Shown here piece after piece: positions 29,495 to 54,800 of a stretch of 64,000 bases of DNA. The notes beneath the pieces are model-generated. The model ran no database searches and was not told the origin of the DNA. It saw only the letters and a list, made by a program, of their open reading frames with translations. The DNA comes from Ascidiella aspersa (Eukaryota). Both the position numbers and the translations under genes were made by a program. The first letter of the stretch is position 1; each line of letters starts with the position of its first letter. The DNA is taken from assembly GCA_963924565.1 (NCBI GenBank), contig OZ004613.1, positions 7,998,001-8,062,000 of the forward strand, in the 5' to 3' direction.

Positions 29495-30255
29495 ACTTAC
29501 CTTCTGAGCAAGTATTTTGACAATGATAATAATTATATTAAAAACAGCTTAATATGTTTCTTATAGAAAAACATTGGAACACTCTGTTGGCGCACAAATC
29601 ACGTTGAATTTTATGTTTTGACATTGTTTTAAAACTTATGTTTTTGCTGTTCGCATGTCCAAACAGAAAACTGGCAAATTAATTAAAAAGTTAAACGTTA
29701 TTCTAATAAAATCTGTAGTTTTAGTGATAAATGTATGCAAAAATGCCGGCAAGATGGCGTTTCGTGTTGGCTACACGCAAAATCATCAAATTGGTGAAAA
29801 CGTTCACAAACTTTGCGGCACTTATTAGCCCAAACGGGTGAAACTTTCCGCCAGCAAACGCCACTGTAGGATAATGCAATCTTGGCACCACATTTTGACG
29901 GCAAACATTTACACAACCAATCGCCAGGGCCGAAATAAGACCCAGAAATACATGCGAATTTGCTCGAAAACTGTTCAGCGTTTTTACGCAGCGAACGCCG
30001 TACGCATAAAGCAACAGCTCAACGCAACCACGTGACTCAGGCCGAATCACTTGCGCGGGTTTTCTGCCAATTTAGAGGGAGAAAGTCTACACAGCTGATA
30101 TTGCCTCGTGCCGTTTCCGAGCACGGGCGTTGTTTTGCACGACGAGTATGCTTTTCTAAATGCCTGTCGTCCCAATTATCAAGTTCACAGACGGTCAGCT
30201 AATTTCCAGTCGGCGATGTTAACTCTTGTTTTGCGCTCTCCTTAAAACGGTAAGT
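29495..30255. promoter_or_regulatory. Candidate NSD promoter and first non-coding exon
   Basis: CpG-rich stretch with YY1-like CAAGATGGCG (29750) and E-box/AP1-like CACGTGACTCA (30030). Plus-strand donor ACG|GTAAGT at 30250 would pair with the acceptor at 30800, 4 nt before the ATG. Confidence 0.5.
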
Positions 30256-30804
30256 TTTTTGCCATGCGAAAAACACGTGGAGACTGTGTCTAGTCTGGGC
30301 GGTCTGCGAAACCTTTGTTCGTTTGTCTGCGTCGTTTATTTCACAACCACAGTTTGCTTAACAGTTATGGCATTTGGATACACCACATACATTTTTTTAT
30401 GTAACAACTTTTCAGTAATTCAACTATTAACTATCTTAATTTTATTCCATTAAAAATTCAACACAGTTTTGTATTATATTTTACAAAGTAGTTTTTTTCA
30501 AAACTATGCAAAATACGTTTTTGCCAATTTATTTTAAGCACTAAAATATGATATTTCAATGAACAATTGGTTAACAATGTAATGTTGATTTTAGTCCAAC
30601 ATTATTGCAAATTATATTAGTTGGTAATATTTTATTTGAATGCAAAATATTCAATCCATTTTGCAATATATAAGTGTTTTTTTGCAAAACTAAACCGCCA
30701 ATTACAAAACAAACAACTATAATATTGGTAATATAAGTGTTTTCTTTATTTGCATTATGTTTGACATTTGCTTAATAATGAAGCATTATACTTTATGCAG
30801 CAAA

Positions 30805-33800
30805 ATGGTGTCGAATGGTGATTTCGTGCAAAGTCTGGTGACCCAGAATCTGAAAAACGATGTTATACAACCAAAGTTTAATGAACAAATGGACGACATT
30901 TCAGATTCCACAAAACCAGCCACACATGCCATTTTGAATGGAGATACTGCTGCAACCGATCATACACATGAGAATACAGATATTTTCGAAAAGCATTCCA
31001 ATTCAGTAAATCTGGAAAAACCTGTTGTTACAACTAAAAAGCCAACAACTGAAAATAAACTTCCAGTTGTGATGGAAGAAAATACACAAAAAGACGCTGA
31101 AAAATTGAGTGAAACAGATACAGTAGCTAACAATGGCTTAAATAATGCTGTAAATGTGTCAAAAACCATTATCGAAGAGCTTATTACTTCTGTTCTTAAA
31201 CAAGAAGATATTGACAGCTTGAAATCGGAAATTGGAAATACATTTGCCAAAAATCCTACTGGTATGTTAATTTTTGCATATCCTTTAATTAAAGTCTTCA
31301 ATTCTATTATTTGTTAGTTCATTAATAGTTAACTATTTATCTTATGGCTTCTGTCTAATATTTTAGAGGTAACTTTTAATTTTAGGTCTTTCGCTGGCTA
31401 AAGATGATAAAGAAGTTCCAACCTCACCTAGGTTTGTGTCCTTTTTCTATTTAACTTAAAATTATTTATTTGATTACAATGAGATGACCCTTGTATTATA
31501 CATATATATATACCTGTTTTATTTTAGTTTATATGTTAGTGTAGTGGTTTTCAACCTTTTACAGCTTACGGCTCCCTGCCCCCAAAAGTGAATATATTTC
31601 GGCGCCCTTACCAGAATTTTCACAGCATAATCAACATGTTGGAAAATATATTTTGCTTTATTGTCCTCATATCACACGCAAAGAGTTTGTATCAAAATTT
31701 TAACCAATAACAGCAAAAATCAAACCTCAAGATTCCCAAATATTTCGCAGCACCATTGAGCATTAGAAATGGCACCCCGATTGAGAACCACTGTGTTAGT
31801 TTGTCTGCTACTACTTGATTGGAGCTGATTACAGATACCAAGTGCCAGTGTTGTTATTAATCATAGGGTGATCATGGTCCTGATCCGAACCCACAAAAAA
31901 CTCAGAACTGTTTTATTTTTGTCAATTTTGTTTGTTTAACCATAGCAATTAGTAATGACATTATTTCGCGTAGATTTACAGCCATAATAGCATGCATCGG
32001 TATCAGAATGAAATTTCAACTGTCAGACATCGCTAATACATGTATAATTTATTATTATTAAATCGTTTATTTCACCATTCAATCATTTGTTTAAGAGAGA
32101 ATATATATATTTGAATATAGAAATATGTTAGGAACAATCTATTACAGTTTTCTATTATTAAAACGTTTTTCAGAGTTTCGAAGAGAAAAAGAAAGCCCAA
32201 AAAATCCCTGGACTACGATGAAGAAAAAACAGAAGACGCAAAGCCTGAACCACTTCCACCAAAAGAAAGGGTAATTTAAGATAAAAAATGACATAACATA
32301 CCACATATTCAACGCAATAGGACAGGTTGTTGGCTACGCCTGATATCTATATTTGGTTAGTTTAGAATTTTTATCTCCAAGTCTGTTATGTGCCATTTTG
32401 TCAATTAAGAATGCCGTTGGCAATCATTTGACCTAGTTTGGTGTTTGTAAATTTTGTAAAGCACAATAAAATTTGCTTATTAGCTGCATTAAACTTAGTT
32501 CATAAATATGACTATATCTCAACTTCCTAAGTTTGGCTTTATTGTTTTAGATCCCCATCATAGAAACCGAAATAACATGGAAGATTGGGGACTTGGTTTG
32601 GGCTTATGTCCCCGGTCATCCCTTATGGCCCTGCATGATTACTCTCCATCCAGAAGAGGAAATATTCACAAAGATGCACGGTCAGTTATGACAGCTGTAA
32701 AAACTATACATTATACCAAAATATTAAAATTTCCAATTTTTGTAAAATAGAATATGTTGAATTAATTGTTGGATTTTGTGGTTCTTGTATAAGATAATTT
32801 TATGACACAGTATAAAGAATCATTAAAAACATTTAGTTGTAGTTGCAACAATATCCATTATATCAATAGGCCACTCTCTTGTTAACAGATTTACCTTCTT
32901 TTGGTTACATTTTTATATCTGGTTATAGGTCGCGGGCCGAAAGGGTGCCGAGTATACCACGTTCAGTTTTTGGGCGACAGGCCAGAACGAGGTTGGATCA
33001 CGGAAGCTAGAATCTTTGTTTACGAGTCTCCAGAGGATTATTCGAGAATCATTAAAGATTTAACCGTAAAAAGTAAAAAGATGCCGTCAATAAACAAAAT
33101 ACCAAGAATGGACATTCCTGTAAGGTAGGTATATTAGTTTTAGTTTTAACTGTTTGTCAACTATTAATGTACGCATATTTCTCAACATTAAATACTTCTA
33201 AAAAGTTGCAGCCTTAAATTTCTGCCTTGGCAGTAATATCCTCCAATTTTATAATATTTTGATAAATCCTGACCTATTTTTTTTAACACTTTGTTGTACA
33301 TAAGGCAAACATGTGTCAGAAGCTCAAAGTTTGTTTCACAAAACTACAATTATATTTTTTGCCGTCAAATGTTTTAGACCGATTTTTGTACGATACTTTA
33401 TAGAAAAAGTATACATCGTAGAATTCTCAAATTTTCAGACAAGACGCAGAGTGGCATATAGGTGTGCATAAGACGTTCATGAGTCTGCAACCCTAGGGAC
33501 CTTCGATTGGGGGGCAAAAAACCTAAAATATTGTGACGTCATTGAATTAGCTTTCTGTAGCTGTCGACCACCATCTAGTTTTACTTATTATTATGCGACT
33601 TGTTATGTTGCCCGAAAAAAAAAAATTTTGTACAGATGTTGTGTCTGAATTATTTTTTTAATATTTGTTTAGTTTCAATATTGTAAATCTTCGTTAGGTT
33701 GAAAGATAATTGGGATTCGGCAGTTGCTGAGATACTTGAAGCTGTCCCACATTCAGCCGAAGAACGAATTCAATTGTTTGGCTACGACTTCAAGCCCTTT

Positions 33801-36800
33801 ATCAAAAAGCTGGTTAAGCAGAAAGTTGATGTAAGTCAAGACTGTTCTTATGTTACACTCTTTTTTTTTGCCAGATTGCTGACAGTTTTTGGTAGGCAGC
33901 AAGCAAGTTAAGAAAATTAATCTTTGATAATTTATCTACACCCTAATAGCTATGTCCCCTGGTATTTACCTATCTATTACATAGAAGACTAAAACGGATT
34001 TGAAGGGCAAGCACTGTCTAACAAAATCATTTCCATTCATTTTTTTCAATTTTGTGGTTTTGGTTACTTGCATGAAATTTTGGAATACGCTATAAGTGAA
34101 ACTTGGCATACTAGTTATGAAATGGCCTAGTGAATTTTAAAGCCTATACAGAAGTAGGTATCATTTTTAACGAATCGACTAACTCTTCATTAGATGTTGA
34201 TTACCTACTTTCTGTATGGGCTTTATTATTCTAAATACGTCTTACTAAAACCTCAAACCAGTATGCTCCATAGTTATAAATAAATTTTTAGAGTTTATGT
34301 ATTGCATGTTTTTGTTTATTGGTGCAAGGCTTTATAATTTTCATTTAAAACGTTAACTTGAGTGACTAATCCTGTTTGATACATTTCTAAAAGAATAACG
34401 AAGAGGTGTCGGCGCAAGCTAAAAACACAGACCTACAGGAACTCCTGATTCAGGCATTACAACTAGACTTACTGCCATCGGATGAAAACAGCGTCATTCA
34501 AAGCAAATTTTCTGCAAAAAACTTTCAAGAAATTGCAGCAGGGGACGCAATGTTAATTCCAGCCTCAACTGCTATGAGTAAAAACAGTATCAGTGACCAA
34601 AATACCTCACAAACGCAAACAGATGTTGTCATCTTTAAAGAGGATTCTGTAGTAATTCTTAAAAAATCTGTCAGTTCAGCAGAACTACCGAATGTCCAGT
34701 GCCAACCCTCTATGCAAGATATTGATGTAAATTTTGAAACAACGGACACCTTCAAATCCATGTCGAATAAGGATGGCAACTTAAAATCTGGACAGAGTGA
34801 AAGCGTTTTGAGTAACGACTTTAAAACAGCCATAAAGAGTAACAGGACTGCACAACCGGAAATGGCAGGTCCTGCAAGTTGTGTAGCAGCGGTGTCAAGT
34901 GAAAAAGCAATTGATAAGACTACTAGCCATGTCGGATATGGCCAAACTTCTTTATCAACAATTCATTCTGTGCCAGACTGCATTGAACTACCCACTCCAA
35001 AAGTGACAAAATCTATCAGAACTAGTTTGCTTTTTTCCTATGTGAGTAGTAAGCCTAAAAAGCGAGTGTCGCTGGGAGACCAAATTGACACCTCACATAT
35101 CAGAAGACTTTCTTTAAACATCCCTGCGCAAAATCGAAGAAAATGCAAATCGGAATCGCATATATCACTATCGAAACTGGGAACTACAACAAACACTGCC
35201 CTTTCTGAAAACACTGAAAGGCGAGAAAAGCAAATGCACACATTGCTTTCTGAACAAAGTATCGCAGAGCAAGAACAAACTGTTTTGCACTGTGAAAAAA
35301 CAGCCACTTTCCGACAGTGTCTGGGACTCATTGCCAAACATACGCCAGCAGCACTTAGTCAAAGTTGCACATTGACAAAAGAAAGAGCCGAAAATGCGGT
35401 GGCTGCTTTAAAATCAGAGTCGTCCGATGCCGCTGCGGAAACGACCTGCTCTTGTACTGCGTTAAAAGAAACCAGGGGTATCGGAGACAACACGTACACT
35501 GTCCGTGAGCTCATAAGTGCAATTAACTTGGTCCAGGACGGATTCCCGGTTCGCGCTGTTGCCCCCAACTTTCAGATTCCTTCGTCTACCCTTTTCGATT
35601 ATTCAAGTGGCAAGAAACACCTGGCCGTCAAGCACCATTCCGACTGTAAACTTTTTGCCAAGGGAAAGTTTGTGATAATCCAAAACCAGGTGCATCACAT
35701 TCGACTGATTGGCGAGTCGCGTCGACTAAGAATTGCCGAAAAACTGGACAAAGCCAAACCTACAACTCCAAGTTCGATTCCCAAGGAATCTTTAGAGTTA
35801 AAAGTCACACAACAAAAAGATAAACCTACAGCAAGTTTAAAATATCCAAGAGTTTTACTTAAAAAACATGTAGAAAATTCAACTTCTGTTCCTAAAGTAA
35901 CAGAACCAGATATCGCCCATATTGGTCGTAGAAAACTAATTGCCGCCCAAAGAAAATACAAGTTACTTCCCGAGAAAGATAAACTCCCAGAATCTGGTGT
36001 CCTAAATAATGACAACTTCCAATCAGCACTGAGGCGGTGCATCAGAGGAAAAAAGCTAAGTTTGGCAGCAAGACAGCATAACATTCCCGTGCAAGATTTT
36101 TCTGACAAGATCCTTTCTCTTTTGGGAAAGGAGAGAACACAGCAAGACTGTCCCCCTAAACCTGTCCGTGTGAATTCCTACACTCACAAAAACATGTTGG
36201 AAGCACTTGACGCATATTTTAGCGGCGCCTTGACTCTCAGTCAATCCCACAGAAAGTATAACATACCTGGAACAACGTTAAGGGACAGTGTGGTTCGCAA
36301 CAAAGCCATTTATGACCGGGTGATCAAAAACCCGAAAATGCAAAGAAGAAGTCGCGTTGCTCTGCTTATAAAAAATATGAATTTCTTCCGAATGTTTGGT
36401 TCAAACTCGAGACGCAAAAGTTCAACCCGGCTTTTAATGTCACAGGAACGAAGCAGGCCAACGGAAAACCTGAGGTCATCGAAAACCTCAAATTTAGTTG
36501 CGAAAACAACAAACCTACCTCAAGACGCGAAAAAAGATACTGTTGAGAGGCCGAAAATGGCTGCAAGAACGTACAGCTTAGAGATCTTGCAAACTGCAAT
36601 TGCGCAAGTGCGTTCTGGGGATAGACTGGTGGAAGTGGCGCACAAGTACAACATACCACGTAGCACCCTTTCCGATCATGTGTTTGGGCGCCACAGAAGA
36701 GGTCTGTCCAGTGGTTTAACTGCTCGGTGGACCGCTGATCTCGACAAGAAAATCGCTATTTGCATCAAAGAAATGATGCGCTGGGGTTGGACCTTGAGCA

Positions 36801-39800
36801 AAAATCAACTTTCGTCGTTAGTTGCCGAGCATTTGACGGCAATTGAAAGCAAGCACTGTGTGACTGATATTTGGCAAAAGTATTTTTGTTGTCGTAACGG
36901 CATCATTACCAGCGATGTTAATGAAGCCATGTCGGATACTGAAGCCGACCCCTATACAGTTTACTCCTTGTTCGACAGACTGGAAGAAGCGCTGAAAAAT
37001 TTTGGTCTTGAGAATAATCCCTCACAGGTGTTTCTAATCCACGAGCTCCCAATAACAGCAATTGATTTACCGCAAGCCAGTACTCTTCTAACTGTTAATG
37101 CAACTGGCGAGAAATTCACCCCTCTTATCATTTTCAAAAATGACACTATATGGACCTGCGATCAAAAAAAGCCATTTTGTTATTCGGCAACAATGACGAG
37201 CAGTGGCTTTCTTGACCGCACCACTTTTTCTCGGTATTTAAAAAACTTCGTTGCTGACATTTCAAAACCCACTGTGTTTTTGTTTGACGGCCAATTGACA
37301 GACCTGACAATTGGGTTTTTATCGTGGGCCTTGGAGAAAAAAGTGGTAGTGCTAAAACTGCCATATCCATCGAGCAAAATAATCTTTGACGTTCCGTACA
37401 GTAATGTTGTCAAGGCTATGCGTCAAATCCTGGCAAGAAAAGCAAAGCAAACGAGAAACAATAACAGAAGTGCTTTGTCGCTTGTAAGTGAGGTTTGGGA
37501 CAATGTGCTGACTCCAGAAACAGTAATATCCAGCTTCGACGAAAGCGGCTTTTTCCCAGCCAATCGCGACAAGTATCCGGCAGAGACCTTCAATCCAGAA
37601 AAGCTGCACGATTTCTGTCTCCGAAATGGAAACAATCTCTCTGGCTCGCTAAGGCCACAAGTATGTTGAACAATCAGCCAGCAGACCGTATGCTTGACAG
37701 CCAGTTTTCAGCGCCTTCTCCCTTTAATTTTTTAACCGGTATTCTTATTTCAGTGTTCTGGAACAACTGTTCTACTGCTGCTGCCAAAGATGGCCACTTT
37801 GCTATTTTTTCTCTCCTTGGATTTCTTTGTGATTTTTTTGGCTGAAATTTGTCGCATTGAAGTTTGTGCGCACAGCAGTGTTCGTTTGTTGTTCCAGAAC
37901 ATTGGACATTAGAAGATGTTTGGTTGTGAAAATTATTTTAAAAACCTAACCCGGTTGAAAGCAAAAAAACTGGCTTTCAGGCAAACGCTGCTGTGCGTAC
38001 TTTATTACCTCACAATTGACATTTGTTTTCTAACAAATCTACTCTTGTTATGCGCAGGAGTCCGATGTCAGTGCCCAAAAGAAGACGCAGATTGGTCGCA
38101 AATTGCAGCAGTTAAAGCAAAAGCAGGCGGTCAAACGTCTTAACACTGCAAAGGCGCGAAAGACTGAACAGCTGAGAGCAATTCGGAAGCAAAAAACAAG
38201 AATACACCAGTCCGGTATTGTCATTTTCTATTTACTGTTTACGGATTTTAAATATGTTTAACCATAGCAGCCTCAAAAACAAGGTATTGCATTACTAATC
38301 TTAAATTATTTAAATTAGGGTAACTTTGAACATTTGTTGGATTTTTAGCCCAGGTAGTTTGCCATACAAGTTAACCTAGAATGCAAAACTAAAAAAACAC
38401 ATTATATATTCATCCTTACATAGGGTTGTTAACCCTGGCTGAAATGCTTGTTTTAATTTGGGTGTTATAAGCACAAATATGATTCAAGTTGTGAATTAAA
38501 TACTGCTACTATGACCTGGCATCAAGAATATGATCCCAGATTCTTATTTTAAGTCACTATATTACCAAGATGTTTTTTTGCCAAGCTAGTTGCTTTTGAT
38601 AAAAAAAACAATTATTTCACAGTTTATATAATTATAAAAGCGACATGTTATTTGTTCAGATATATATCTGTTTTTGTTACAAATTTTGTTTTCAAACGTG
38701 TACGGCTACCAACTAGAATCTGTACTAATTGTACAGTTAAAAATACAAAAAAAATGTATTTGCAGATCAGTTGAAGCAAAAGTTGTTGAATGGACCGCAA
38801 TGCCGCAACAAACTTTCTGATGCCAAGTTGTTTGAGCTCTATTGCCAACACCACAAACCATCGGTAAATAATACTAAACATAGATCTGTTATTCATAGAT
38901 TTGTTCATTTTAAATTATGGTTACCACAGTTGTAGTGAAACAACTGATATCTTAAAGCATATGTTTAAAACAATAATTTTGCTACCAAATTACTTATAAA
39001 ATATATCATCATTGTTATTATACATTATATTCCCTATAACTTTTGGGTTGTTCTTTCTATACAGGAGAATATAAATAATTAAAAAGCATTTTTTCTTGAA
39101 CTGGTTTAAAAAAAGGTTAAGTTATCTGCCATCCTGTACAGCAGACGTTCTTAATCTTTTTTACCTTATCACCCATTTCTGTCCAGATCAAAGTCCCATT
39201 ACCCAAAATCCTATTTTATCTATTTTGCTATTTTACCATACTAAAAATACAAAACACCGTTATTCAACTCAATATAGATCGCACGTCTCAACACTAACTC
39301 TAAATGTACACTTAGCTGTACTACTCCAAACAACTCCACTAAGAATACCTTAAAAAATGAACATGACAGCGATCAAGCTGCTCATAAAACAGCTGTAACT
39401 GAACTGATTATGAAAAAATAGCTAGGCTAGCTGATACAAGAAAAATCTTAGTACTACGCCATAAAAATAAAATATGTAAACAGCCGACAAAACATATCAC
39501 TTTGACGAAACAATTCTAAAATTGATAAAATATCACTGTGCTTGTTTGGTTGTTTTAAAAGCACTCAAAACATTAAAAAGTGTAAGTAATAAAGAAGTTT
39601 TACCACTTATAGCTGTGACATTGTTTGTTAAAACCATAATTCTAAATATTCTGGTCAGCTGATTACCCACCTGTCATCCTGAAATTACCCACATTGGGTA
39701 ATTCTGCATAGGTTAAGAACCGCTCCTGTACAAAAATATTGTACAATGAGTTACTGATAATTTTTTTTGACTAGTTTTGATTATCACTGAAAGCCCTTTT

Positions 39801-42800
39801 ATGTTTGCTAGGTTAATTAAATTATTGCAGTTTAGTTTTTTTCTTATAATATTTTTCAAAAAAATTTGTCAAAAGTGCTGTTTTAATCGGATTTAATATA
39901 TTATCCAAAAAAAAAACTTAACAGCTATATACCAGGAACTGCCAATAGACTAACCGAATCATTTAATCCATTGGGATTTGCATGCAGGGCCAACAAAAAA
40001 AACTCCTGTGAGGTTCGAACCACCAACCCGATCATACCAAGCTATCGTTTTGTTATTGTTGAAGAAATATTTTTTTTAAATCATGTTAACTAGAGATCGA
40101 CCGATATCGCTTTTTTTTTACCAATACCCGATTTTTTACAATTTTGTCAACCGATAATACCGATACCGTTTTTATATACCTAAGAAATGTTCAAAATTTG
40201 AATTAATTGACAATAAAATCCAAATAACGTTTTAGTTTATATACCTTTATTATTTATTTAATTATTAGTTTGCATATTAACTTGCCTGATGCTAAACCCA
40301 ATTTTTTTAATAAAAAATGGGTAAGTTGTTTGCTGTACAGGAAAAATGATATCATATTTTCGCACTAAAATATCGGCCTACATTTACCGAGCCGATATAT
40401 CGGTAGAAGCCAAATATCGGCCGATATTATCAGTAAACCGATATATCGGTCTATCTCTAATTTTAACCTTCTAATTTTTTAGATCGCTGCCCAGAATCCT
40501 GAGATGACCCCGGAACAGCTTGAATCAATGATCTGGATGGAGTGGGAGGCACTGTCGCCACAGGAACGGAGCTCCTCTGTGCAGAAAGAACTCGTTGCAA
40601 CTATTTCGAAGCAGAGTAACACACTAAAACGAAGGCCCGGTCGGCCCAAAATATCTCGCGAACCCCAGGTAACTGTTTTGGTGTAGCACAGTGGTTCTTA
40701 AACTAAGGTTGTAAGCGAAATGCCAGAGAATTTTTTTTGGGGGGAGGCCTGCAGTTAATCTTTTAAATTCATAGACTGCTAACATAATTCCTTTAATAAA
40801 TAAATTAGACAACTTGTGTACACTGTAGTTCAGTGATTCCCAACCAGTGGGTCGTACTTCTTAATGTTACAGTTTTCCATTAGATCGGAAAATTATTGTA
40901 TTACCTTTGAGTAACATTTGTGCAACAAAGTAACAAATATGTAACAATTAGATGTGTTGTGTTGCATTAACTATATCAGTACGTACGTCAGTAGTAAAGA
41001 TGCAGGTTTTATGTAACTTTATTCATTTGGACGTATCTCATTGTGGGTCGCACAATAAAACTTGCATTTAAAGTGGGTCGCGAACTGCAAAAGGTTAGGA
41101 AGCATTGCTGTAAAGCATAGATTTTACCCATGCAGAAAACCGTGTCTTTCACTAAACGAACATACCCCAAAACTAGCATTTCTCGATTCTCGTTTACCTT
41201 CTATTTCACAACATCAAGGTCATTTCCGATGAATCGGAAGAAGAGGATGACTTTGTAGCAGAGGAGGGAAGCGATGGCGAGTCATACTCGTGCCCTCGAT
41301 GCCAGGTCGCCTATCCAACCAAAGTGTCGTTGGGTCAGCACAGGCGATGGTGCATTCCAAGTAATGCAGGTAACGTCTTGAGCTCGCTGCAGATTTAGTT
41401 TTTATTACGAAACACTCTGACGAGAAACTGTGCTTGCAGATGACGTCACGAAAAGATCGAGATCGAAAGAATCGCGAAAAACGTCGGCTGAGTCTCAGAG
41501 CAACGACACCATTCGTAAGATTGCAGTTATTTATCCTAATCTAACGATAATGATGCCTAATAAATTCAGAGGGTTTCAATCGTTCTTTTGTGTTTGTGTA
41601 CGTACAGTAGCGTTGCATGAGTTGACTGCTGTTTTCAGTCTAAAAAAACGTGTAACTGAAATCAAATCTAAATTGATTGAGTGCTAAAACGTCAAATTAA
41701 ATTCTATTAAAAAAAAAATCATTAATTTTTAAATAATTTACTAATGTTTGAATTAGGCCTTCGTGGAACTTAACTAGTTTACGTACCCCCAATGTGTCCA
41801 TGGACCCCAGTTTTAAGAACCACCGGCCTAATTAGTTATATAGCATTTTTTTTAGTTAAGCATTCATCGTTGACATGTTACCAATAATTTGTTCTCTAAC
41901 ATCACAAGTTCTTCATTTTGTGACAGGGGGAGAGGGTGTTTCGCATTTCACTTTCGCCTTTACCCCGGCGCCGAAAGGTTTCGCGTTCACCTGCGCCAAA
42001 TGCAGAACCAAGTTTTTCAGCGCCAAAGCCCTGCAAATTCACAAGAAGTTCTGTTCAGCAGGTACAAGTAAGGCACTTTTGTTAATCCTTGAGTGGAAAA
42101 AAACACATTTAGATGTTAACACTTGGTTAGCTAGGCTTAATAAAGCAGGTCTGCGGAGTCGGTTAAAATAACCAGAGTCCGAAATGTTCGATTTTGTCTA
42201 GTTCTCAGCTCGTAGACCCGAGTCCGACTCCAGCAAAACAAACTACTCCGTCGGGTCCGAGTCTGTAGCCCTGCTTTAAAGTTGCTTGATTCTCGTTTTG
42301 CTCTCACTTAAAAACAAATGTGGTAATCTGACGATTTGAGAATTGTGACAAAGATTGTTAATCTTGTCTGCTGTCTGCAGCAACTAGGTTAACAAGCAAC
42401 TCTTAAGAATTCCCTTCATCTTGAAGAAGGCGACTTGAATAGGTCGCCGAAACGCTGGACAATAAATATTAATGCCAGGGGGTTATTTTTTATTAATATT
42501 ATGCCGGGCAGCACAGTTTATACAAGCAACAGTAAAACAGTTATACAATCAGCTGTTAACGATTCAATTGTTATGGTGAAGGGGATATAGCAGGGGTGGG
42601 CAAATGTATTCAATGGAAGAGCCATTTGCAGAAAATACAAGCACCAAAGAGCCTCAAAATTATTTCAATACGAAAACGGTAAATAATGCAAGGCCAGTCG
42701 CAATAACAACAGAATTGTAATATAACGAAACGGTAATAATCAACACAATAATAACGGTAGTAGCAAAATAATACGCACAATATTTATTAATGTCAGTCTT

Positions 42801-45800
42801 TTGTTAACTAACTCTTCGGCCTCTATGTCTAGTGTGACGTCATAAACGAAATGCTGGCCTAAAATAAAGAAAAGAAAAAGAGGGAAGCGTTTATAAACGG
42901 TATTTTTGGTAACCTTTAGATTTTTTTGAAATATTACGATTCAACTAGAAGAGCCACAAAAAACATGCCGGAGAGCCGCAGTTTGCCCACCACTGGTATA
43001 TACCATTAAGATCAATAGTTGGCTATATTTTTGAACGCCTTTTTATACTTATTAACTGTTACAATCTTTGCATAAAAATGTTTAAATAACAGAATTGCCG
43101 CAAAGCCTTTTAAAGTTTAAATGTCTATGAATTGATTAAAGGCCTTACTGAAAATCAATAATTAAAAAAAAGACACGAATATTTCAAAAGAAAAGAGTTA
43201 AATTAAAAAACAATGCTTCGGCGCATTTATTTTAAATGTATTTAAACTTCTTGTTCTTGACGTCAATTTATGACGTCATCTTAAAAAATTTCTTATCGAC
43301 TCTGGTCCACGCAAACCCCCAAAAAATATTAGGCCGCACGCTTTAAAAAAACTTCAAGAACCACTGTGCTACCCCAACCTTCCAAAAAAACACCAGAAAC
43401 TTAAAACAGCAGTTCCCCTGAAGTAATAGAAGGCTTACACATTTAAATAGCTCATAAAGCACTTACATTAAAATGTGCTTTAGCAACCTCACTGTTAATC
43501 TTAACACCCCCCGATCGCAGCTTCGCCGGTCAAGTCTCCCAAGAAGTCAAAGGTGCCTTCCACTACCAGCTCAAGCGCAGCTTCGTCGCGCAAGGGTAGC
43601 ACGAACCAGGATGACGCCAGCAGTAACGGTGACTCTGTGGAGAACGGCACCGCCAAGAGGTTTAAGGGACCTCAGCTGGGATCGAACGCCAAGAGGGAGA
43701 ACATTTGCCCCGTAAGGAGTTTTTGATTTTTTTTGGTTGGTTTGGTTGTTTGTCTTGTGGCATACTGAGTGTGTAAAAAGAAAAGAAATCTACTCGCCCT
43801 CACACAGACTTTGACAACTAGACAATTCTAGTTTTCCAATTCAATGGATTAGAGCACAATGGGGCTAGTTCTAATTTATAATCTGATTTGTGAATTGCTT
43901 GTTGTGCTCAAATTCTAGTTCTAATGTAAATAGGATTTTACCAAAAATGCTAGAATATAAATTGAAATTCTTTGGTTGGAACGACTTGTAGGTGATTTTT
44001 ACAGGCTGAAAAGCATATGTTATTCTAAAAGGCATAAAAATTAGGGCGGGAATATTTACCATTCACATTCTAATATTCTTTAAGACTTACCTGTCTCAAC
44101 CAAAGTCAGTCATTTATAAGTTCTACGGCCTCATCAGTCTTATTTTGTATGAATCTTATTACGAAATTAATTCAATCGTATTAAGACTGATAATTTAATG
44201 CGTTATTTTGTTAATTCCCCAAACATTTGCTTAGCGCCAAAAAGTATTTATTTTGTATGGAACCATCATAGGGCTTAATGTAGGGTTGCTACCAAGTCTT
44301 TGAATATTTGATTGTCTTTCAATTGAATTGATTTACGTATTAAAAAGCCTTCAAAAAACCCTATGTTTTTCCGAAAGTATCCAGCTAAAGTTATGTGTGT
44401 AAAATATTTTTAATTGTGATGACCATGACATTTATACCGCTTTGTTTTCGAATTGCATTCAAAGAACGTCAAGCTATCTTTAATAAAAAAGCACAAAAAA
44501 ATTCTTTAGAAATTTGAATTTCTTATATCAAATTATGTAGCACTAGATGACTAGAGCTTAAGATTTTCGTCCTGGGATTGTTTGCCTTTAACTTTCTCCT
44601 GTCGTTTCACATTATAATTCGTTCGATTCTGACAGGTTTGTGAAAGCTTCAGCGACGACCTGATCCCATGCACGGGCGGCTGCTGCCAGAGCTACCACGA
44701 TTCTTGCGCCAAACTTAGCCCCGACGGGGAAGGGTCGGTATGCGACAACTGCAAAAACGGTAAGTCGCCGTTTATGGCCAAATTGGATTGCATGTCTGTC
44801 AGGGTTGTCGCAAAGTGTTGATTTGAACATCGAAAAGGCGTTGAAAAAACCTTTTTTTAACTATCTGTTATTGCGTTGACCATGTGGCATGTACACTGTT
44901 TTATTTTCGAATTATATACACTACATGTCAAGTAAAACTATTTTTTTAAAGCATAATTAAGTCTTAAATGTTGTGAAATTGTTTATTAATATTGTGTGGC
45001 CAATATAGGGATGTTCAAAGTAGAATCCAAGAGGATTCTAGAACTTTAGGTTTCAAGTCTAGAAAAACGAATCCAGAATAGCCAATCCTAGTATATATTT
45101 TTTGTTTGGGGGAGGGATTAATCTTAATATACCCTACAGGGCCAACAGTTCCAGCAATAAACATTTTGTAATTAATGAGCCATTTTGCACAGGTTAGAAA
45201 AAATAAAGCCCTGGAGTTTTGAAAGTTGGCACATATAAACGTATACTATACAACCTAACATCCCGATTGGAAAATACGCACAGGTTCACACGCCTGCTTC
45301 ATTTGCAAGAAGGCGCCTGCGGAAAGCACCGAAGACCTTGGTGAGATGCGAAGGTGTGGGGTGCAGAACTGCGGGCGATCCTACCACGGCACCTGTCTGC
45401 GCATGCGCAAGCTCGCCATCGCCGGTGACGAGCTGGACAAAGACAAGGGTGAAAGGTCAGTGGCTGACCAGTGCTTAGATTGCCCTGAATTTTGATTATG
45501 ATGATTGTAAAATCATAGATTGCTGAAAACCACATTATCACAAAAGACTTGAACGGTTCATTAAATCATTTTGGATTAACCAATGTCGTTACACCATGAA
45601 CAAAAATGATTCGTGGTTTCCGGTTATACTCGTCTCTTTAGCTAACGCCTCAGCTGATAAATTCCTCGTTGCTCAATGGTGCAGTTTAGCGGATGACTCC
45701 GTCACTTTAAAACTTATCGTATACTTCAGCGACGTCTAGCTTTATTTTTGTTTCAAACTTTTTAGTATATTATCTAGCTAACACATTCTCGTTTTAATTA

Positions 45801-48800
45801 TTAACCCTAATATGGTTAGCTGTTATCTTCTGTAGCAACATCGGTTTATAACTTCATTAACACCAGAAGAGCGATTTCTACATAATGACCAAATATGTCA
45901 GTACTTCTCTGCTACTGCAGTAGTTTACATGCTTCAGATTAGATTGATTATGAGCAAAATGCTCTAAAAACTATTGAAGCAATACAAAAATATGGCTGAT
46001 AGTAGTTAACTTTGTTATTGGCTAATTTGTGATATGTTAACTTTAGGCTTACATTCGTTGGAGAAAATTCCCGCCGATAAATGTTCAGTTTTAATTGTAT
46101 CCTTTTGTAAAAACCTGCAGCAAATTAGGCTACGAATGTTTAAAAGCCTCTGTTTTATACTTCTGTCTAAATGAGTTTAGGCATTTTATGTGGTTAAGAA
46201 TACACTAAGATTTATAAACCACACCTAACCACGTTTTTTTGTTATACCCATGAATGATACGTCTTGGGCCCGTAGTGTCTTCATTTTCTTCTACACTGCG
46301 ATTCTTTGAAGGATAAACTAAACAAGCTAACGATACAATCCAGTGGTTCTCAACCGGGTGCCGCTGCGCCCTAGTGTACCATTTCTAATGCTCAATGGTG
46401 CCGATAGGTTTTCTTAAAATTTTAAAGAATTTAAAGTTTGCTTAATTGGTATTGAATGTTAGGTTAAACTCAACATAAACCCGCCGGTAATGTCGTTTAT
46501 TGCCCAAGTATAGTTAACAGAAAACTCTTTTTTTGTGTCGAACTTAACTTAATTAATCGTTTAACGGACACATTTTTACTAACTTTTCAAAAAATTTCAA
46601 AAATAAAAAGCCTAAACGCCCGGGGATTGGTATTTTGACGTCGCGTGTGTACGTTTTTATCTATATGTTATTCTTGGTTTTTAGACAAAACTTTCTCAAC
46701 AACACCCGCTGTACATTCCACCATTGCGCCACTTGTGCTTCAAAAGCTTCTGGAGAAGACCCTTGCCTCACTAACGCCGCCCGACAGCGGATGTTTAAGT
46801 AAGTTTATCTTTTGTAACACCGATTAAATATTTGTCAAGAATTTCTAATGGTTTACAGAAATATATAGAGTTTTTCACTTTACTAATTATTTTTCCTAGT
46901 GTTACCCTTTTGGTATTTTCTCCCAAGACCGCTTACAAAAGTGTACGGTATCTTTAAAATTTATTTATTGATGAAAATGGTAATATTTTTTTTAAACTAT
47001 TTTTAACCATAACATGTGCTTTAATTACCCTCCCGCTTACCACACGGGCGACAAAGTCTTAAAAAATATTTGAAAATTTACAGAAATCAGGGTATACCTC
47101 GATTTACCACACGGGCGACGGCCGTATGACAAAGTCCTGGGACAATTTGGCAAACTTATAGAAATTTTATTCTACCTTGTTTTTTCCACCACCTCAGGTG
47201 CATCAAATGTCCTACCGCTTACCACACGGGCGACGACTGCTTGGCTGCCGGCTCGGTGATCAAACCCGGCCTGAACATCATCTGTCCCGACCACTTCTCA
47301 CCGCACAAGCAAGTCCCACATCACCAACCCGTACACGTCAGCTGGTGTTTTGTCTGTTCGAAAGGTAGATATCCACAGACTGGAAAAATCTTGCCAGTCT
47401 TCTGGTGCCAAACGTTTTGGCCCAAGTTCTTTATTTATTTTTTTTAATAAGTTCGAGATGACCGTAAGGCCTGACCATCGCGGGCCTGATATTACATTTT
47501 GTTTCGAACTTAACCTAATTACTATCGTTAAACGAAGAAAAATATAAAATATAGAAGCCTATGCAACAAAAAATGTAGTGAACTTTAGTAAATTGTCGTT
47601 CATCTTAAACCCCTCTTTCTCCCAACAGGAGGCCAGCTTGTGTGCTGCGAGGGTTGTCCCGCCGCATTCCACCCTACTTGTGTGGAGATGGAAAAACCTC
47701 CTGATGGGGAGTGGTTCTGCCGGGATTGTCGCAACAGAAGAAGGCCACTGTATGGCGAGATCGTCTGGGTCAAACTCGGCTCTTACAGGTGGGTCGCTCG
47801 ACGGGTTTGAGACATGGCTGCGGAGTCCGACTTTGGCGAAAGAAATGAACACGAGCTTCGACTTACGACAAAATGTGCGATTTTGTAGATTCCTGAGTCC
47901 TACTCAGTCCCGAGTATCCTACCAAAAAATATACACCAGTCCGACTCCGGCCAAATGAGCGATTTTGTTGTCTTATCAGTTTCGAATCTTTGTACTGCGC
48001 ACGTCGGACTCGGGACTCTGATAGTCTTACGCGAATCCCAAATCTAGCTTCAACAAAAGAAACCGATTTTCCAAAAAATGGAAAAGTGAAATGGAGTCTA
48101 AATACATTAAGTGCAAAAACGTTTAATTTTTAAATAAACTCTTTTCTTAAAATAATTGATTGCATTGAGTATTTCATTTAGGCGTTCATGGACCCCCTAA
48201 ACTAGTTCACGTACCCCCAAGTACTTCAGATCGTTTATTATAATTAGAGAATAAAACCTACAATTTCTAATTGGAAAAAATAAGTTTTTTGTTCCTTGGA
48301 CATTTAAATTTAGTGATATAGTCAATTGTCGTTTTTTTGAGTAAGGATAAAAACTTGTTAAGTTCGATTGCATCGGCCTCGCAAACCGGCCTAAAACATT
48401 TTTTACGCTTTCAGATGGTGGCCTGGCGAGATTACCCACCCGAACGAGATCCCGGATAACATCGAGCGAATGCAGCACGGGGTCGGAGAATTCGTCGTCA
48501 AATTTTACGGCTCGAACGACTACTTCTGGCTCAACAAGAGACGCGTCTTCGTATACCAGGTAATTTATTGAAATTTTGAAACAGATTTTGTTCGAAGCTT
48601 TAACACGAAACTGCCGTTAAATTTTGTTTTGTATATTTGATATTATCCTGTGTAGAAATTGTATCCCTGTTTTTCTATCGAGACTTTAGACACCAGTGTT
48701 GCAAACAAGTCATTTTCAAGTCCCAGTCAAGTCATTTAAAAAAAAACTTAGTCAAGTCATTGTTAGGCTTAACCTTCATCATTTTTAAACATTCTGGTTG

Positions 48801-51800
48801 TTGGTGATTGCTAGGTATACAGCAAGTCCGGCCCGATGCGTTGGAATCGTTTTTCTTACTCACTGTGTAATGCGCGATTCATTACTATTAAAAGAGTTGT
48901 TTAGTAGAAGTATGCCGATTACTTACCACAATACTGTGTAGAATTGACCGAAAGTTGTGTCACACAAATTAAAAACCTTATCATTGAAACATATATATGC
49001 CTGGCATTTTTGAGGTCTGGCTTCAGTGACCCCACAGTATTTTTTGTTGTCATTTTCCGGAATTCTAAACGCGAGCGAATTTTATGAAAACTTCTAGGCA
49101 TCTTGATTTTGTTAATTACTGAAAATTGTTTACGGTCGACTGGCGACTATTAAAGTAGACGCAAAATAAGGTATAAAGGCAATTTTTTCTTATTTTACAC
49201 CCATAGAAAAAATTGTGCCAAACAGAATAAATATTTTGTTTACTTGCTTTAACGAAATATTTACACTTACTTAAAAAAAATAAAATTGTAATTTGACCTT
49301 TCTGAAGTCCTACTTGAAAAATCGTACTTTTTGAAACAAAAACTCTTCTGAAAAGTGCTTCAAAAAACGCGGAAAAACCCACTTAGCGCTTCAGTTTTTA
49401 TACTCATCTTACCAAATTCCAAAAAATTCTTGATTGTTTTTGCAACAGGAGGGCGACACAGGTGCGACCGCTGCCAACTGTTCGCGCGGCATCAGCAACG
49501 TTTTCAACAAAGCGCTGCAAACAGCACGTGAGAGGTTCGAGTCAATCGCCTCGCACAAGCAGAAGGTGCAAGACAAGAGGACCCAGAATAAGAGGCCAAC
49601 CTACAAGCACATTAAGGTGGGTGGTGGATTGTAAAATGTCAAAAGATATTGTATTCATGGGTACACTATGCACGGATCTGTAATGTAGCTTAGTCGACCC
49701 TTTTGGGCTTTGCAATTCATTATCAAGCTATATCGTATTCATGTACTTAATTGAAATTCGAGGTAGACCCATATAGTGGGTTACCGATAAGGTCGCCCGA
49801 TATTTTGCTTCTCTCGGTATATCGGTATAGGTTAACTTAACTTTTGTTAAAGCCATAAGACCTTAATAGGAACAACATCAACGTCGGAATAAAACACAGT
49901 TCTGAATGAGACCAAAATAGGAATAAATCCTAATAGGCGTAATAACGTACAAATCGAAATAAGCCGTAAATCTGTCGAAATAAAATCTCAATCGTCAGAA
50001 TCAGGTCTATACAACCTGCAGTTTGTTTTTAAATTTGTACTGCGCACGTCCGACTAGGGACTCGGAAAGTTTTCTGTGGTCTTTCTCGAGTCCGACTCCA
50101 GCAAAATAAACCGACTCCATTGAGTCCCGAGTCCGAGTCTGACACCGCAGTCCTGATGACAAGTTTTCGCAGCCAGGTCAGACTTAATACCAGCTAACGC
50201 TTAAAATCACCTATTACCAACGTTTATCTTACCTAAGTCAAAACGAGGTGCCGCGATCGACGCAATCAATTTATCAAATGCATATAGCGTTAAACGTTGT
50301 TCGAACTTGACGACAATTATCATCAACAATACAAATATTGTTGAAAAACGATGTTGAAAATGAATAAAGAGTTATTCGAAACGTTCAAAGTGATACCTAC
50401 TTCTGTGTGGGCTTTGATATTCTAAATACGTTTTACTCCAACCTCCAACCATTATGCTCCAAAAAATACCAATATTTTGTGTGTGCAGATCAACAAGCCG
50501 TGTGGCAACGTGCAAGTGTACACGGCCGACCTTAGCGAGGTTTCCCGCTGCATTTGCAAGCGAACTGACTCGCACCCGTGTGGACCCGAGTCCGAATGCC
50601 TCAACAGGATGCTTATGTACGAGTGCAACCCGACTCTTTGCCCGGCAGGTGAGCGAGTAGGCGGGTATTTCATTCTGGGTTGACTCTGTTTTTGGTTGAC
50701 TTCATCTTATTTTTGTCGCCTATCACGGATTTTTAGCTTTCTAGTCTGCGATCCTTTTACATTTATTTTACACGTTTTGCGACTCTTTCAGATTGAAAGT
50801 AATAAACGAAATCTTTCTCACTGTTTGGCTCAATACACAATTATTTATGTATTGTGAAAGTCAGCTAATTGCTTTGTGTATTATTTAAAGTAAAATAGAG
50901 ATCTATGTAGATTTTGTGCGAAATTAATTATCGCCCATTTTGCGAAGTTCACCGCAATTATGGTATTAACAGTCGTTTTTCGTTTAATTGTTTTTTCAGT
51001 GTAACTTTGGTTTGTTGTTCTTATATGTTATAAATCAACCTAATCAAAACTAGGGCTAGTGATGTACTTAGCGTTTTTTTTCCTTCGCACGCCACAAAAC
51101 AGGCAACAACACAAAAAAAACATTTTTTCACAGGCCACAAAAAACTTTTTTTTTCGAAGGCCACAATTTTTTTATTTTTTCGAAGGCGACAAAAAATATT
51201 TTCTCTCGCAGGCGACAAATGCGAGAACCAACGTTTTACGAAACGAGCTTACCCCGAGTCTGAAGTTTTCCGAACCGTGTGGGGAGGTTGGGGACTCAGG
51301 ACAAAGGTCAAGATCAAGAAGGTAAGTCGAAGTCCAGAAAAAAAGTGGAATTTGTTAAAAAAAACATAAATAATAATAAAAAATAAAAACATGCCCTTTT
51401 AAACAAAATTCAGCTTGTAATGGTTTACAAGAGAAAACAAAGTTAAAAATTGGGAAAAAACATTCAAAGGATTTTCTGAATGTCAAGTACTAAGGTTTGC
51501 CAAACAAAACTCGCTCAAGACAAAAAAGAGCCTGAAACCTTTAAAGCAATGTCTGCCCACATCTCGAAGTTCGTTTCATATGAGTTTTATCCCACTTCGA
51601 CTAAATGTCACAATTACAGTCCTAATGATTTAACGAATTTTACATCCAGTACTTGAATGTTGACAAGCCGTACTCGCAAATTTAATTATGTACTCGTATT
51701 GTCACTAGCCGTATTCATATGTTTACCAACCGTAGTAGTATATTTACGTCACATACTCGTAGTATACTTACATCCATATACTCGTATAGATTTACATACA

Positions 51801-54800
51801 AATACGTATATTTACACCCTAAAATACTCGTATAAATACATCCTAAAATACTCGTATAAATACATCCTAAAATACTCGTATAAATACATCTTAAAATACT
51901 CGTATAAATACATCCTAAAATACTTGTATAAATACATCCTAAAATACTCGTATAAATACATCCTAAAATACTCGTATAAATACATCCTAAAATCCTCGTA
52001 TAAATACATCCTAAAATACTCGTATAAATACATCCTAAAATACTCGTATAAATACATCCTAAAATACTCGTATAAATACATCTTAAAATACTCGTATAAA
52101 TACATCCTAAAATCCTCGTATAAATACATCCTAAAATACTCGTATAAATACATCCTAAAATACTCGTATAAATACATCCTAAAATACTCGTATAAATACA
52201 TCCTAAAATACTCGTATAAATACATCCTAATACTCGTATATTTACATCACACTACTCGTATATTTAAATTCAAATACTCTTATATTTACATTCAAGTACT
52301 CGTATATTCACATCCTGAACTCGTACAATAACACACCTCATACACTCAGGGCATGTTCGTGAACGAGTACGTGGGCGAGTTGGTGGACAACGAAGAGTGC
52401 TTACGCCGCATCGAGCAAGCGCACAAGAACAACGTCACCAACTTCTACATGCTCACCATTGACAAGGTAGGACTACTCGTATATTGCACCTGTTTTGTTC
52501 CTTGTTATAACGTGGTCTGTAAACACAATCGTATCTAAACAAGTAAAAGGTTGCATCTGCCTGGCAAACGGTCTTGCTATTAAAACACCATTGACAAGGT
52601 GCGGACCCGTTTTGTTTCTTGCACCATTGTGTAAATACGATACCAAATGATGTCATTACTATGTTCAAATTAGCGAAATAGATTCAATTAAAACGTTCAA
52701 ACCTATTTTTCAAGGTTATTTGACAACAGTTTGCCTTAGTGATAAATAGGTTGGATACATCCAGTTGTTATCTTGTTATTTTTTATCAATTTACCTTTAA
52801 AAGTAGAAATCGCTGCGCTGGGTCGCAAATCACGGCTGAAATGTTAATTTGGTGCCCGATACCACGAGATATCGGACGAGTAACGATACTACCACTTGGC
52901 ATCCGGTATCCGATCTGATTCTAAATTTTATCGGTCATGTACAGTAACATGCGAGTAATTTTTTTTTTCACGATTTTATAATTTTTTCACTTGTTAAACA
53001 CGAAAAGGCCAATAATCTTGTGGTCGTGCGTAGGACCGCATTATAGACGCGGGTCCGAAGGGCAACTACTCCCGCTTCATGAACCACTGCTGCGACCCAA
53101 GCTGCGAGACGCAGAAGTGGATGGTGAACGGGGACACGAGGGTCGGCCTTTTCGCCAGGAAGGATATCAACGAAGGTGGGAGAAATCGTACTTTGTGTGC
53201 CATTAGTCCTATCTGTTTTGTGTGTAACTTTGGTTAATGTTCTGTACCCGTCTTGTCCCATGTGGTTTAGTTTATATGCTGACCTTGTTGGGTTTTGCTC
53301 TTGCTTTCTCCTTCACTTTATATTTGTACCTCCAGGAGGGTTAAATTAACCCGATTTGCCTCTGTTCTAATGACTTGAGTGTTTTTGAATGACTGTGTTT
53401 AAATAACTTGGCTTGAATTTGATAGTTTCGGTAAAATGTCTTGACTTGGACTAAGGCCATTCAGTCAAACGATTTGAAGTTTTATCGTCTTTGGTTGTCT
53501 TTAAATAATTATATAAAAAAACTGTAATAGCCACCCACACCAGGTGTAAAATATACAAGGGAGAAAGAGAGTTTTCCAATAATATATTTTGTCTGCCATC
53601 AGGCGAAGAGCTCACCTTCAACTACAACCTCGACTGTCTTGGCAACGAGAAAACAGCTTGTATGTGCGGATCCAAGAACTGCAGCGGATTTATCGGCGTA
53701 AGACCCAAGGTAAGTAAAGAACGACCTTGGTAAAACACTTCTAACAAAAAAGGAGTAAAGGTCTCCGATTTTGTTCTGGTATCGATTTAACAGAGCCCAA
53801 TGGGCAATTGGGCCGAGGAATAAATACGCCGTATTTTTTACCCGGGATAACAGCAATGGTCATAATTTGTGATAGTGAAGGTACGTAACTTTTAATATAA
53901 GACAAATGATAAGCTCGTAAACATACGAGCCGACGATGCCAATATAGGCGAAATATATATTCCTTTAAAAAATGTCTTATCCTGGTTTATTTGGGTTTTT
54001 AAACTTCGAGTTTTATTGTTTAATTCTCGCTTTGTTTAGTTATATTGTCATTAAACTTGTACAGTATTAATATTAACTATATATTCAATCTTTATCCTCA
54101 ATATATCATCTCTCAACTTTCTTTCGTTATAATCTTCCTTATTATATATAATCTTCTTTGACACAAGGTCTGATAAAAGGTATTTGCTTTAATAAATCCT
54201 CTCCTAGATCGTCCTCTCAATCTTCCTCTTCCTCGTTTACGTCTTTCTAATTTTCTGACCATACTTTTCTCATTTTATTTTAGTAACAATTGTCCTCTCA
54301 TAGTCTTGATTTTCCACTTTAAATCCCCTTTGTCCCGAAAAATATTAAAAAAGTTGTTTTTCCTTTTTCTTAAGCACAGCAAATTTATTCCTAAAATTTG
54401 TATTTTTATTTCTATATTTCCACTTCCCGCTTACCACATCCGATTTATCATAACAATTTTTTTTTTACATTCCGCTTACCATACTGGTGTTGCTTTATTT
54501 TTTTCCTTCACCACTCCCTCCTCCTTACAGCCACAGATGGACCCAGGAGCCGCTCTTCCCGCAGCATCCGGGAGGAACAAGCGGAAGAAGAAGAGGGCGG
54601 ACTCCCGCATTGTTCCCAAGCACGACGACTTCTGCTTCCGATGTCGTCAGACCGGCATCCTGGTGTGCTGCGACGTTAGAGGGTGCCAGAGAGCATTCTG
54701 TCTCTCCTGTCTTCGACTCACCAAGCCCCCGTTCGGTAAAAAGCGAAAAGAACCGAAATTGCTTGGCTGGGAGATTTAATCCTCCAAATATCATATGCAT

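Follow-up and report, generated by a model that had tools for sequence, protein, structure and literature searches.

We analysed a 64,000-nucleotide stretch of the Ascidiella aspersa genome (assembly GCA_963924565.1, contig OZ004613.1, positions 7,998,001 to 8,062,000 of the forward strand; hereafter the window, with positions counted from its first letter) and found a gene of the NSD family of histone methyltransferases that carries an internal exon of 1089 codons (34394..37660, + strand). We consider it probable, at about 0.85, that this is an ancient, domesticated coding exon derived from a pogo transposase, catalytically dead and alternatively spliced in frame. A first-pass annotation, made from the sequence alone, had read the arrangement as SETMAR-like, and this was borne out by spliced RNA, the presence of a single copy, the lack of terminal inverted repeats (TIRs), synteny and purifying selection.

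In the scenario that we propose, an ancient pogo-type DNA transposon would have inserted in the intron after the PWWP1 exons of NSD, and the host would have captured the inserted transposase as a coding exon. The captured exon would have lost its terminal repeats and catalytic residues, and would have kept and multiplied its helix-turn-helix (HTH) DNA-binding units together with the transposase core fold. Two messenger RNAs would be made today: one for plain NSD, and one for NSD with ~1089 more residues inserted after PWWP1 and before the PHD-PWWP2-SET part. In this insert, a disordered N-terminal stretch is predicted to be followed by a Cys/His-HTH module, three more HTHs, an HTH of Tc5-like type and a DDE core that is dead.

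If this is correct, the gene would represent a second fusion of a Tc1/mariner-superfamily transposase to a histone lysine methyltransferase, independent of SETMAR and much older. Transposase capture is a known source of new regulators, and the published surveys consulted here cover tetrapods or vertebrates (Cosby et al.; PMC7386202). The fusion raises a general question, namely whether a captured transposase can steer a chromatin writer to DNA motifs and for what reason both isoforms are kept, and this question is testable, since the fused exon is optional and also occurs in Ciona, a model open to genetics.

Host gene, exon boundaries and splicing

The host gene is, judged by its sequence, an NSD-family histone H3 lysine 36 (H3K36) methyltransferase with predicted enzyme activity. 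Pfam searches exon by exon recovered PWWP, NSD-type PHD, AWS-SET and C5HCH domains in one colinear gene, and the exons were colinear with those of Ciona NSD, with identities of 45-89% for single exons. In particular, PWWP1 starts in exon 32551..32680 (+), with a Pfam PWWP match on the open stretch and the RNA junction 32679>32928 (cut +1) in runs X4 and X2, and the remainder lies in exon 32929..33124 (+), with a weak Pfam PWWP match and the RNA junctions 32679>32928 and 33122>33696 (cut +2). The exon that adjoins the cassette upstream (33698..33830, +) ends in phase 0 with a GTAAGT donor and is conserved at loci L005-L011 (see below); RNA shows its entering junction and exits to both 34394 and 38058. 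The next NSD exon downstream of the cassette (38058..38214, +) starts in phase 0 and is joined in RNA to either 33830 or 37660, and loose read ends at 38214 run on into the following NSD exon. The remaining exons (40483..56451, +) encode PHD_NSD, PHDvar_NSD, PHD-1st_NSD, PWWP2, AWS, SET and C5HCH, assigned by Pfam per exon and colinear with Ciona NSD. An HMG label previously given to exon 40483-40683 was not confirmed, with no Pfam match at E 0.01.

The longest stop-free frame of the whole window (34391-37666, +; 1092 codons) holds the cassette exon, which is defined by its open frame, RNA and homology. The boundaries proposed for it by the first-pass annotation were all recovered. The upstream NSD exon ends in phase 0 at 33830 (...GTT GAT|GTAAGT), an in-frame TAA is present at 34388-34390, and the AG acceptor ...CTAAAAG|AAT places the exon start at 34394. 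A candidate branch point, TGACTAAT (34363..34370, +), lies 24-31 nt before the acceptor and was matched from sequence only. At the other end, the exon closes after 37660 with CAA|GTATGT, a phase-0 donor two codons before a TGA stop, at which the frame would close without use of the donor (37661..37669, +), and the next NSD exon begins in phase 0 at 38058, after ...GCGCAG. The cassette is thus frame-neutral, as had been claimed: it measures 3267 nt, or 1089 codons, with phase 0 at both ends, and both inclusion and skipping stay in frame. The polyadenylation signals AATAAA and ATTAAA are both absent from 37661-38057. The GC content is 0.43 in the cassette exon, and 0.31 and 0.39 in the flanking introns. 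A poison-exon reading was rejected, since inclusion brings in no premature stop.

Splicing was assessed in two runs: X4, stranded RNA of the same species used as raw reads (~6% read, with a reporting threshold of 3 reads), and X2, which consists of spliced contigs of unrecorded library type. Two other runs, X1 and X3, behave as DNA. The first mates of X4 map to the - strand, which in most stranded libraries corresponds to RNA from the + strand. Depth in X4 was 3.4-9 over the cassette exon, compared with 5-6 for the NSD exons on either side and 0-0.6 for the introns, and no read-start or read-end pile-ups were reported in the RNA data.

All five junctions around the cassette have GT..AG borders. 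Between the PWWP1 exons, junction 32679>32928 was represented by 2 reads in X4 and 33122>33696 by 9 reads, both with an X2 contig depth of 17.9. The skipping junction 33830>38058 was seen as predicted (5 reads in X4; X2 depth 11.8), and so was the junction on the 3' side of the included exon, 37660>38058 (4 reads in X4; X2 depth 3). The third predicted junction, 33830>34394 on the 5' side, was present in an X2 contig (depth 6.75, with a 24-nt side) and remained below the threshold in X4. Both splice forms therefore exist, because GT..AG junctions for skipping and for inclusion were seen in RNA; with both inclusion junctions, the skipping junction and a frame kept either way, the exon behaves as an alternatively spliced cassette. 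Inclusion was ~4/9 from the X4 counts at the 3' junction, a rough value from very few reads.

Domains encoded by the cassette exon

Scanned as a whole against Pfam, the exon matched HTH_psq (E 1.7e-15), CENP-B_N (23.3 bits) and DDE_1 (20.4 bits; cut-off 22). When it was also scanned piecewise, with an HTH_psq cut-off of 20.4 bits, two units passed: HTH3 (residues 598-643; 36185..36322, +), of psq type, with 34.4 bits over residues 598-637 (E 1.8e-8) and a predicted local distance difference test score (pLDDT) of ~90, and HTH4 (residues 729-764; 36578..36685, +), of psq / CENP-B_N type, with 22.7 bits over residues 730-765 and a pLDDT of ~87-95. HTH2 (residues 539-576; 36008..36121, +) is psq-like and sub-threshold (14.5 bits over residues 539-565), and was modelled as three helices with a pLDDT of ~80. 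HTH1 (residues 369-410) gave only weak HTH_23 and CENP-B_N matches.

Disordered linkers lowered the mean pLDDT of the AlphaFold model of residues 299-775 to only 61.9; the model nevertheless contained four three-helix units with pLDDT 74-93 (residues 370-404, 539-576, 598-643 and 729-764). HTH1 and HTH2 were conserved among orthologues though sub-threshold in Pfam. The earlier claim of four psq units was thus upheld for two of them by Pfam, and the other two are sub-threshold, though modelled and conserved.

In alignment with pogo-like transposases, HTH4 is the counterpart of their N-terminal HTH. It is followed by a putative second transposase HTH of Tc5/CENP-B-like type (residues ~780-835; 36731..36898, +), which is indicated by alignment to transposases, a WGW/WGF motif and helices in the AlphaFold2 (AF2) model; residues 776-860 had no Pfam match, yet aligned to the Tc5-type HTH region of pogo-like transposases and were helical in the model.

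In all nine lineages, the most conserved block of the exon (35447..35704, +) comprises Cys and His residues around HTH1 together with a short beta unit, and is marked by invariant columns and an AF2 pLDDT of 74-86. The pattern of residues ~350-437 is C-x-C, HTH1, K-H-H-x-x-C and a further His, with C352, C354, H414, C418 and H435 invariant across 11 sequences, which suggests a possible zinc site. No usable lead to a family for this block came from Pfam or the ESM Atlas (Atlas scores <=0.80), and we flag it here as a conserved Cys/His-HTH module. The N-terminal part of the exon (residues 1-299; 34394..35290, +) is poorly conserved, with no Pfam match and no alignment to Ciona.

The C-terminal part encodes a degenerate DDE (RNase-H-like) domain (37001..37618, +), indicated by the Pfam DDE_1 match, alignment, the AF2 model and Foldseek. 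DDE_1 scored 32.9 bits in the Ciona orthologue, against 20.4 in the window copy. For residues 720-1089, an AF2 model based on 43 aligned sequences reached a pLDDT of 83.8; it contains HTH4, another helical unit that resembles a DNA-binding one, and an alpha/beta core. In PDB, Foldseek matched this model to the SETMAR/Metnase transposase domain (3k9k, 3f2k, 3k9j), to the catalytic domain of Mos1 (2f7t) and to Sleeping Beauty (5cr4), in all cases with a probability of 1.0 and a target-normalised template modelling (TM) score of 0.52-0.60. A PDB sequence search with the exon gave no match at E<=1.

An exhaustive HMMER search with the exon returned 502 proteins at E<=0.001, 98 of them at E<=1e-10. 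After the top eight, which are NSD-linked, the listed matches were mostly pogo-like proteins of 500-900 aa that cover exon residues ~720-1075, and the DDE region was covered by phmmer matches to pogo-like proteins at E ~1e-20 to 1e-30. Two protein searches with a word index, which is insensitive at 25-30% identity and to which we give little weight, found nothing with the exon alone (600-1900 aa) and only the Ciona cluster with residues 60-1123 of Ciona P0151. Taken together, the HTH_psq and CENP-B_N domains, the pogo-like matches and the DDE-fold model confirm the transposase derivation claimed by the first-pass annotation.

We aligned the exon with 15 pogo-like transposases to locate the catalytic residues. 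The first aspartate (D1, motif N-L-D-E-[ST]) is replaced by His883 in the window, and every one of the nine NSD-linked copies has H or Q there; ~20 residues after this position are likewise deleted in the NSD-linked copies. The second (D2, motif Y-D-G-H) is retained as D965, and the third (D3, motif Q-P-L-D) is lost, with P1001 in its column inside a conserved L-P-Y motif. Judged from these substitutions, the DDE core is predicted to be catalytically dead. The exon thus lacks what would mark an active pogo element: there is no intact DDD triad, there are no TIRs and there is a single copy.

As had been noted before, no inverted-repeat pair brackets the open reading frame (ORF), and nearby there are only small intronic hairpins at 37687-37987. 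A check of the 308-Mb genome found the exon to be single-copy, with the next-best matches 24-26% identical. A distant pogo-like frame of 632 aa, 24% identical to the DDE part of the exon, lies elsewhere in the genome (L002; G000:C6:19350303-19351325, -) and may be a separate transposase or a further domesticated copy.

Conservation, age and selection

The best library match of the exon was Ciona intestinalis LOC100184753 isoform X1, an 'uncharacterized protein' of 2305 aa (E 4.8e-90), in which Pfam identified HTH_psq and DDE_1 and then PHD_NSD, PHDvar_NSD, PWWP, AWS, SET and C5HCH. At the Ciona locus (L008), PWWP1 exons (11557-14752) are followed by an open frame of 1262 codons (15296-19081) that ends with a phase-0 GTACGT donor, and the RefSeq model splices this frame to NSD exons. 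Library matches 2-8 were ORFs of 1065-1432 aa on eukaryotic contigs from ENA, Logan and JGI assemblies.

We compared the window, Ciona L008 and six further loci (L005-L007 and L009-L011), with P0005 as a ninth copy available as protein only. All six further loci (6/6) had PWWP1 exons followed by the big ORF, and 5/6 had further NSD exons downstream; at L007 no downstream NSD exon matched, and the contig ends ~3 kb past the ORF. A syntenic exon in related species, which the first-pass annotation had asked for, was therefore present in the same order in Ciona and at six further loci. The frames were open over 1072-1454 codons in the compared copies at a pairwise identity of only 20-44%, against 60-93% for the NSD core exons across loci. 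An acceptor of TTAAAG|A type was present in 7/8 loci, and so was a GTAYGT donor close to where the frame ends; both are in phase 0. When 65 pogo-like proteins were included in a quick maximum-likelihood tree (IQ-TREE), all nine copies linked to NSD fell into one group (Shimodaira-Hasegawa-like approximate likelihood ratio test, SH-aLRT, 94). One old capture is indicated by this group together with the position, the D1 substitution and the deletion that the copies share.

Since synonymous sites are saturated between species at 20-44% identity, we assessed selection from single-nucleotide polymorphisms (SNPs) within the species. Among the 23 variants listed, which are the best-supported ones, 12 were synonymous and 11 nonsynonymous over the whole exon (pN/pS 0.26). 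Residues 1-180 held 3 synonymous and 10 nonsynonymous variants, and residues 300-1089 held 9 synonymous and 1 nonsynonymous. The exon is under purifying selection within the species, and its orthologous position, the frames kept open and this selection together identify it as domesticated. The sampled individuals differed from the assembly at many sites, so that the species appears quite polymorphic. An in-frame 27-nt deletion allele was also observed in DNA run X1 at 34810, in the variable N-terminal part of the exon.

Possible function, alternatives, precedents and neighbouring repeats

psq and CENP-B HTHs are sequence-specific DNA binders, NSD enzymes write dimethylated H3K36 (H3K36me2), and SETMAR has also been reported to act on H3K36. 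With the HTH array identified here, it is possible, at somewhat less than even odds, that the long isoform would bind DNA sequence-specifically and would so place H3K36 methylation at particular motifs, which may be relics of the ancestral transposon ends, with splicing making the choice. A fuller version of this proposal is rather unlikely to hold in all its parts: that a tunicate NSD isoform with four HTHs reads motifs, perhaps pogo end-relics or miniature inverted-repeat transposable elements (MITEs), and writes H3K36me2 there under a splicing switch, independently of SETMAR, having been kept since before Ciona split from other ascidian-like lineages. If true, this would be a DNA-sequence-guided H3K36 methylation system that arose independently of primate SETMAR.

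The captured domain might instead serve protein interaction, dimerisation or regulation, or bind DNA non-specifically, with no guidance by motifs. The dead DDE core is conserved as well as the HTHs are, two of the four HTHs have diverged below the Pfam cut-off, and the most conserved block is the Cys/His module, for which no family match was found; roles of this kind have also been proposed for dead cores in other proteins of pogo origin. Against such a role without motif recognition, four folded three-helix HTHs are found in all lineages, with invariant recognition-helix motifs of IP..TL type, and HTHs of the psq and CENP-B classes generally bind DNA in a sequence-specific manner. We hold a non-guiding module to be doubtful.

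A second alternative concerns the start of the transcript. The exon could mainly be the first coding exon of an NSD isoform with an internal promoter (transposase plus PHD-SET, without PWWP1). Such an isoform could occur alongside the cassette form. In the RefSeq models of Ciona, isoforms X1 and X2 begin at an ATG inside the exon and isoform X3 at M720, and the first in-frame ATG of the window exon is codon 53. In addition, X4 lists the 3' inclusion junction with its 4 reads but has the 5' junction 33830>34394 below threshold, and an unspliced X2 contig (34146-34417) runs into the exon. An X2 contig nevertheless joins 33830 to 34394 across a GT..AG intron; the acceptor has a pyrimidine tract and phase 0 and is conserved in 7/8 loci; and in all loci the frame is open from the acceptor, upstream of any ATG. 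Moreover, X4 depth is 0.3-0.6 in the intron just upstream against ~4.9 in the exon, and no pile-up of read starts was reported. We hold an internal start to be rather unlikely as the main use of the exon. At the Ciona locus L008 (15692-19060), the same gene range has PWWP1 exons further upstream, and splicing to a phase-0 acceptor at 15308 would leave the frame intact; either the N-terminal ends of the Ciona RefSeq models may be incomplete, or the gene may use an internal start.

Finally, a recent neutral insertion of a transposon in the intron, spliced in by chance, has only the transposase homology in its favour, with a MITE-like repeat lying in the same intron, and is excluded for practical purposes by the single copy with nearest paralogues 24-26% identical, the absence of TIRs, the lost triad, the orthologous position across nine lineages in total with frames open at 20-44% identity, and domain SNPs that are nearly all synonymous.

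Several points weigh against the reading of the exon as an old, alternatively spliced and domesticated part of NSD. The 5' inclusion junction comes from one X2 contig with its 24-nt side and is under the X4 threshold; the reads join neighbouring exons only, and no single molecule was seen to span PWWP1, the cassette and SET; and X2, of unrecorded library type, also holds unspliced contigs across both introns. The coding sequences (CDSs) of Ciona RefSeq start in the exon, and part of the inclusion transcripts may accordingly have an internal start. The DDE_1 score of the window copy is formally under the Pfam cut-off. The tree is a quick version with the NSD-linked copies on long branches, and is supportive, not decisive. 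The SNP counts rest on the best-supported listed variants, with 26 more beyond them.

The closest precedent is SETMAR (Metnase), the textbook methyltransferase-transposase fusion, which is young, restricted to anthropoid primates and still debated in function. In both cases splicing brought a transposase of the Tc1/mariner superfamily into a gene for a histone lysine methyltransferase, and the transposase is single-copy, constrained and catalytically impaired, with its HTH DNA-binding units kept; the SETMAR transposase structures (3k9k, 3f2k) also match the core model of the exon. The two differ in the host, which is the SET gene of SETMAR there and NSD here, and in the transposon, mariner Hsmar1 there and a pogo element with psq and CENP-B HTHs here. 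SETMAR has its third catalytic residue changed (DDN), whereas D1 and D3 are lost in the NSD exon. SETMAR is ~50 million years old, and the NSD exon, shared at only 20-44% identity, is much older. In PMC6326780, Hsmar1 is placed downstream of the SET gene, unlike the internal cassette with its own acceptor and donor described here, and SETMAR is described as a sequence-specific histone methylase.

The host-transposase fusions surveyed by Cosby et al. (bioRxiv 10.1101/2020.05.07.082677), such as KRABINER, POGK and POGZ, are similar in that alternative splicing linked an intronic transposon to the exons of a host gene, and purifying selection maintains the DNA-binding domains of the transposon. 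pogo/Tigger elements are a frequent source of such fusions (PMC7386202). Old fusions generally retain the fusion transcript only (Cosby et al., bioRxiv 10.1101/2020.05.07.082677), whereas the NSD exon, though old, still yields both forms. The NSD exon further differs in its partner, a chromatin writer and not a KRAB or zinc-finger domain, and in its four-unit HTH array with the extra Cys/His module. That survey is confined to tetrapods, and includes no NSD fusion and no Ciona, whereas the NSD exon belongs to tunicate-like invertebrate chordates.

The vertebrate pogo-derived genes (CENPB, JRK, TIGD1-7, POGK and POGZ; PMC7386202) are likewise domesticated and have kept HTHs of CENP-B/psq type and a DDE_1-like core. 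Most of them derive from a complete transposase gene, three, namely CENPB, POGK and POGZ, form chimeric fusions that carry extra domains, and none is fused to a SET methyltransferase (PMC7386202). The same survey covers vertebrates only and mentions neither Ciona nor NSD, and PMC12062965 has no mention of NSD or Ciona either.

Ciona LOC100184753 (XP_009860574.2, XP_078492441.1; one isoform is named NSD2) is the orthologue of the window gene, colinear with it and with the same donor type at the end of the exon. It differs in that its cassette part is only ~27-31% identical to that of the window and in that its predicted CDSs begin inside the exon, not in the upstream PWWP1 exons. It is an automated RefSeq model with no function or origin annotated, so that a coding exon of 1000 aa is carried in RefSeq only as 'uncharacterized'. 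Literature searches found no published description of a tunicate NSD-pogo fusion. The first-pass statement that no NSD with such an architecture had been described therefore held for papers and not for databases, in which RefSeq Ciona isoforms X1 and X2 already join the exon to PHD, PWWP and SET; the sequence is already in RefSeq, and its origin, conservation and splicing are apparently undescribed.

Repeats were also observed along the gene. The intron upstream of the cassette contains, outside the exon, a high-copy MITE-like palindromic repeat of ~140 bp (34132..34275, no strand assigned), with a depth of 30,000-40,000 in DNA runs X1 and X3 and at least 600 first-look candidates in the genome, on both strands and at 73-91% identity. 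A second high-copy repeat lies in the intron between PWWP1 exons (33288-33681), with a depth of 1,400-14,000 in the same DNA runs and many loose ends and small 'joints', which are typical of repeat variants. The intron after the cassette contains nested inverted repeats (37687-37987; pairs I1, I4 and I7, with arms of 17-22 nt) that possibly form a long hairpin or a small foldback element. Further downstream, an NSD intron includes a minisatellite (51657-52331) whose tandem units translate in one frame as a run of 'KYSYKYIL' and which gives long spurious ORFs on both strands. Upstream of NSD, there is an intronless ORF of 316 aa (22414-23364, -), whose N-terminal sequence is DnaJ-like (J-domain) and which also has a region rich in Gly and Phe.

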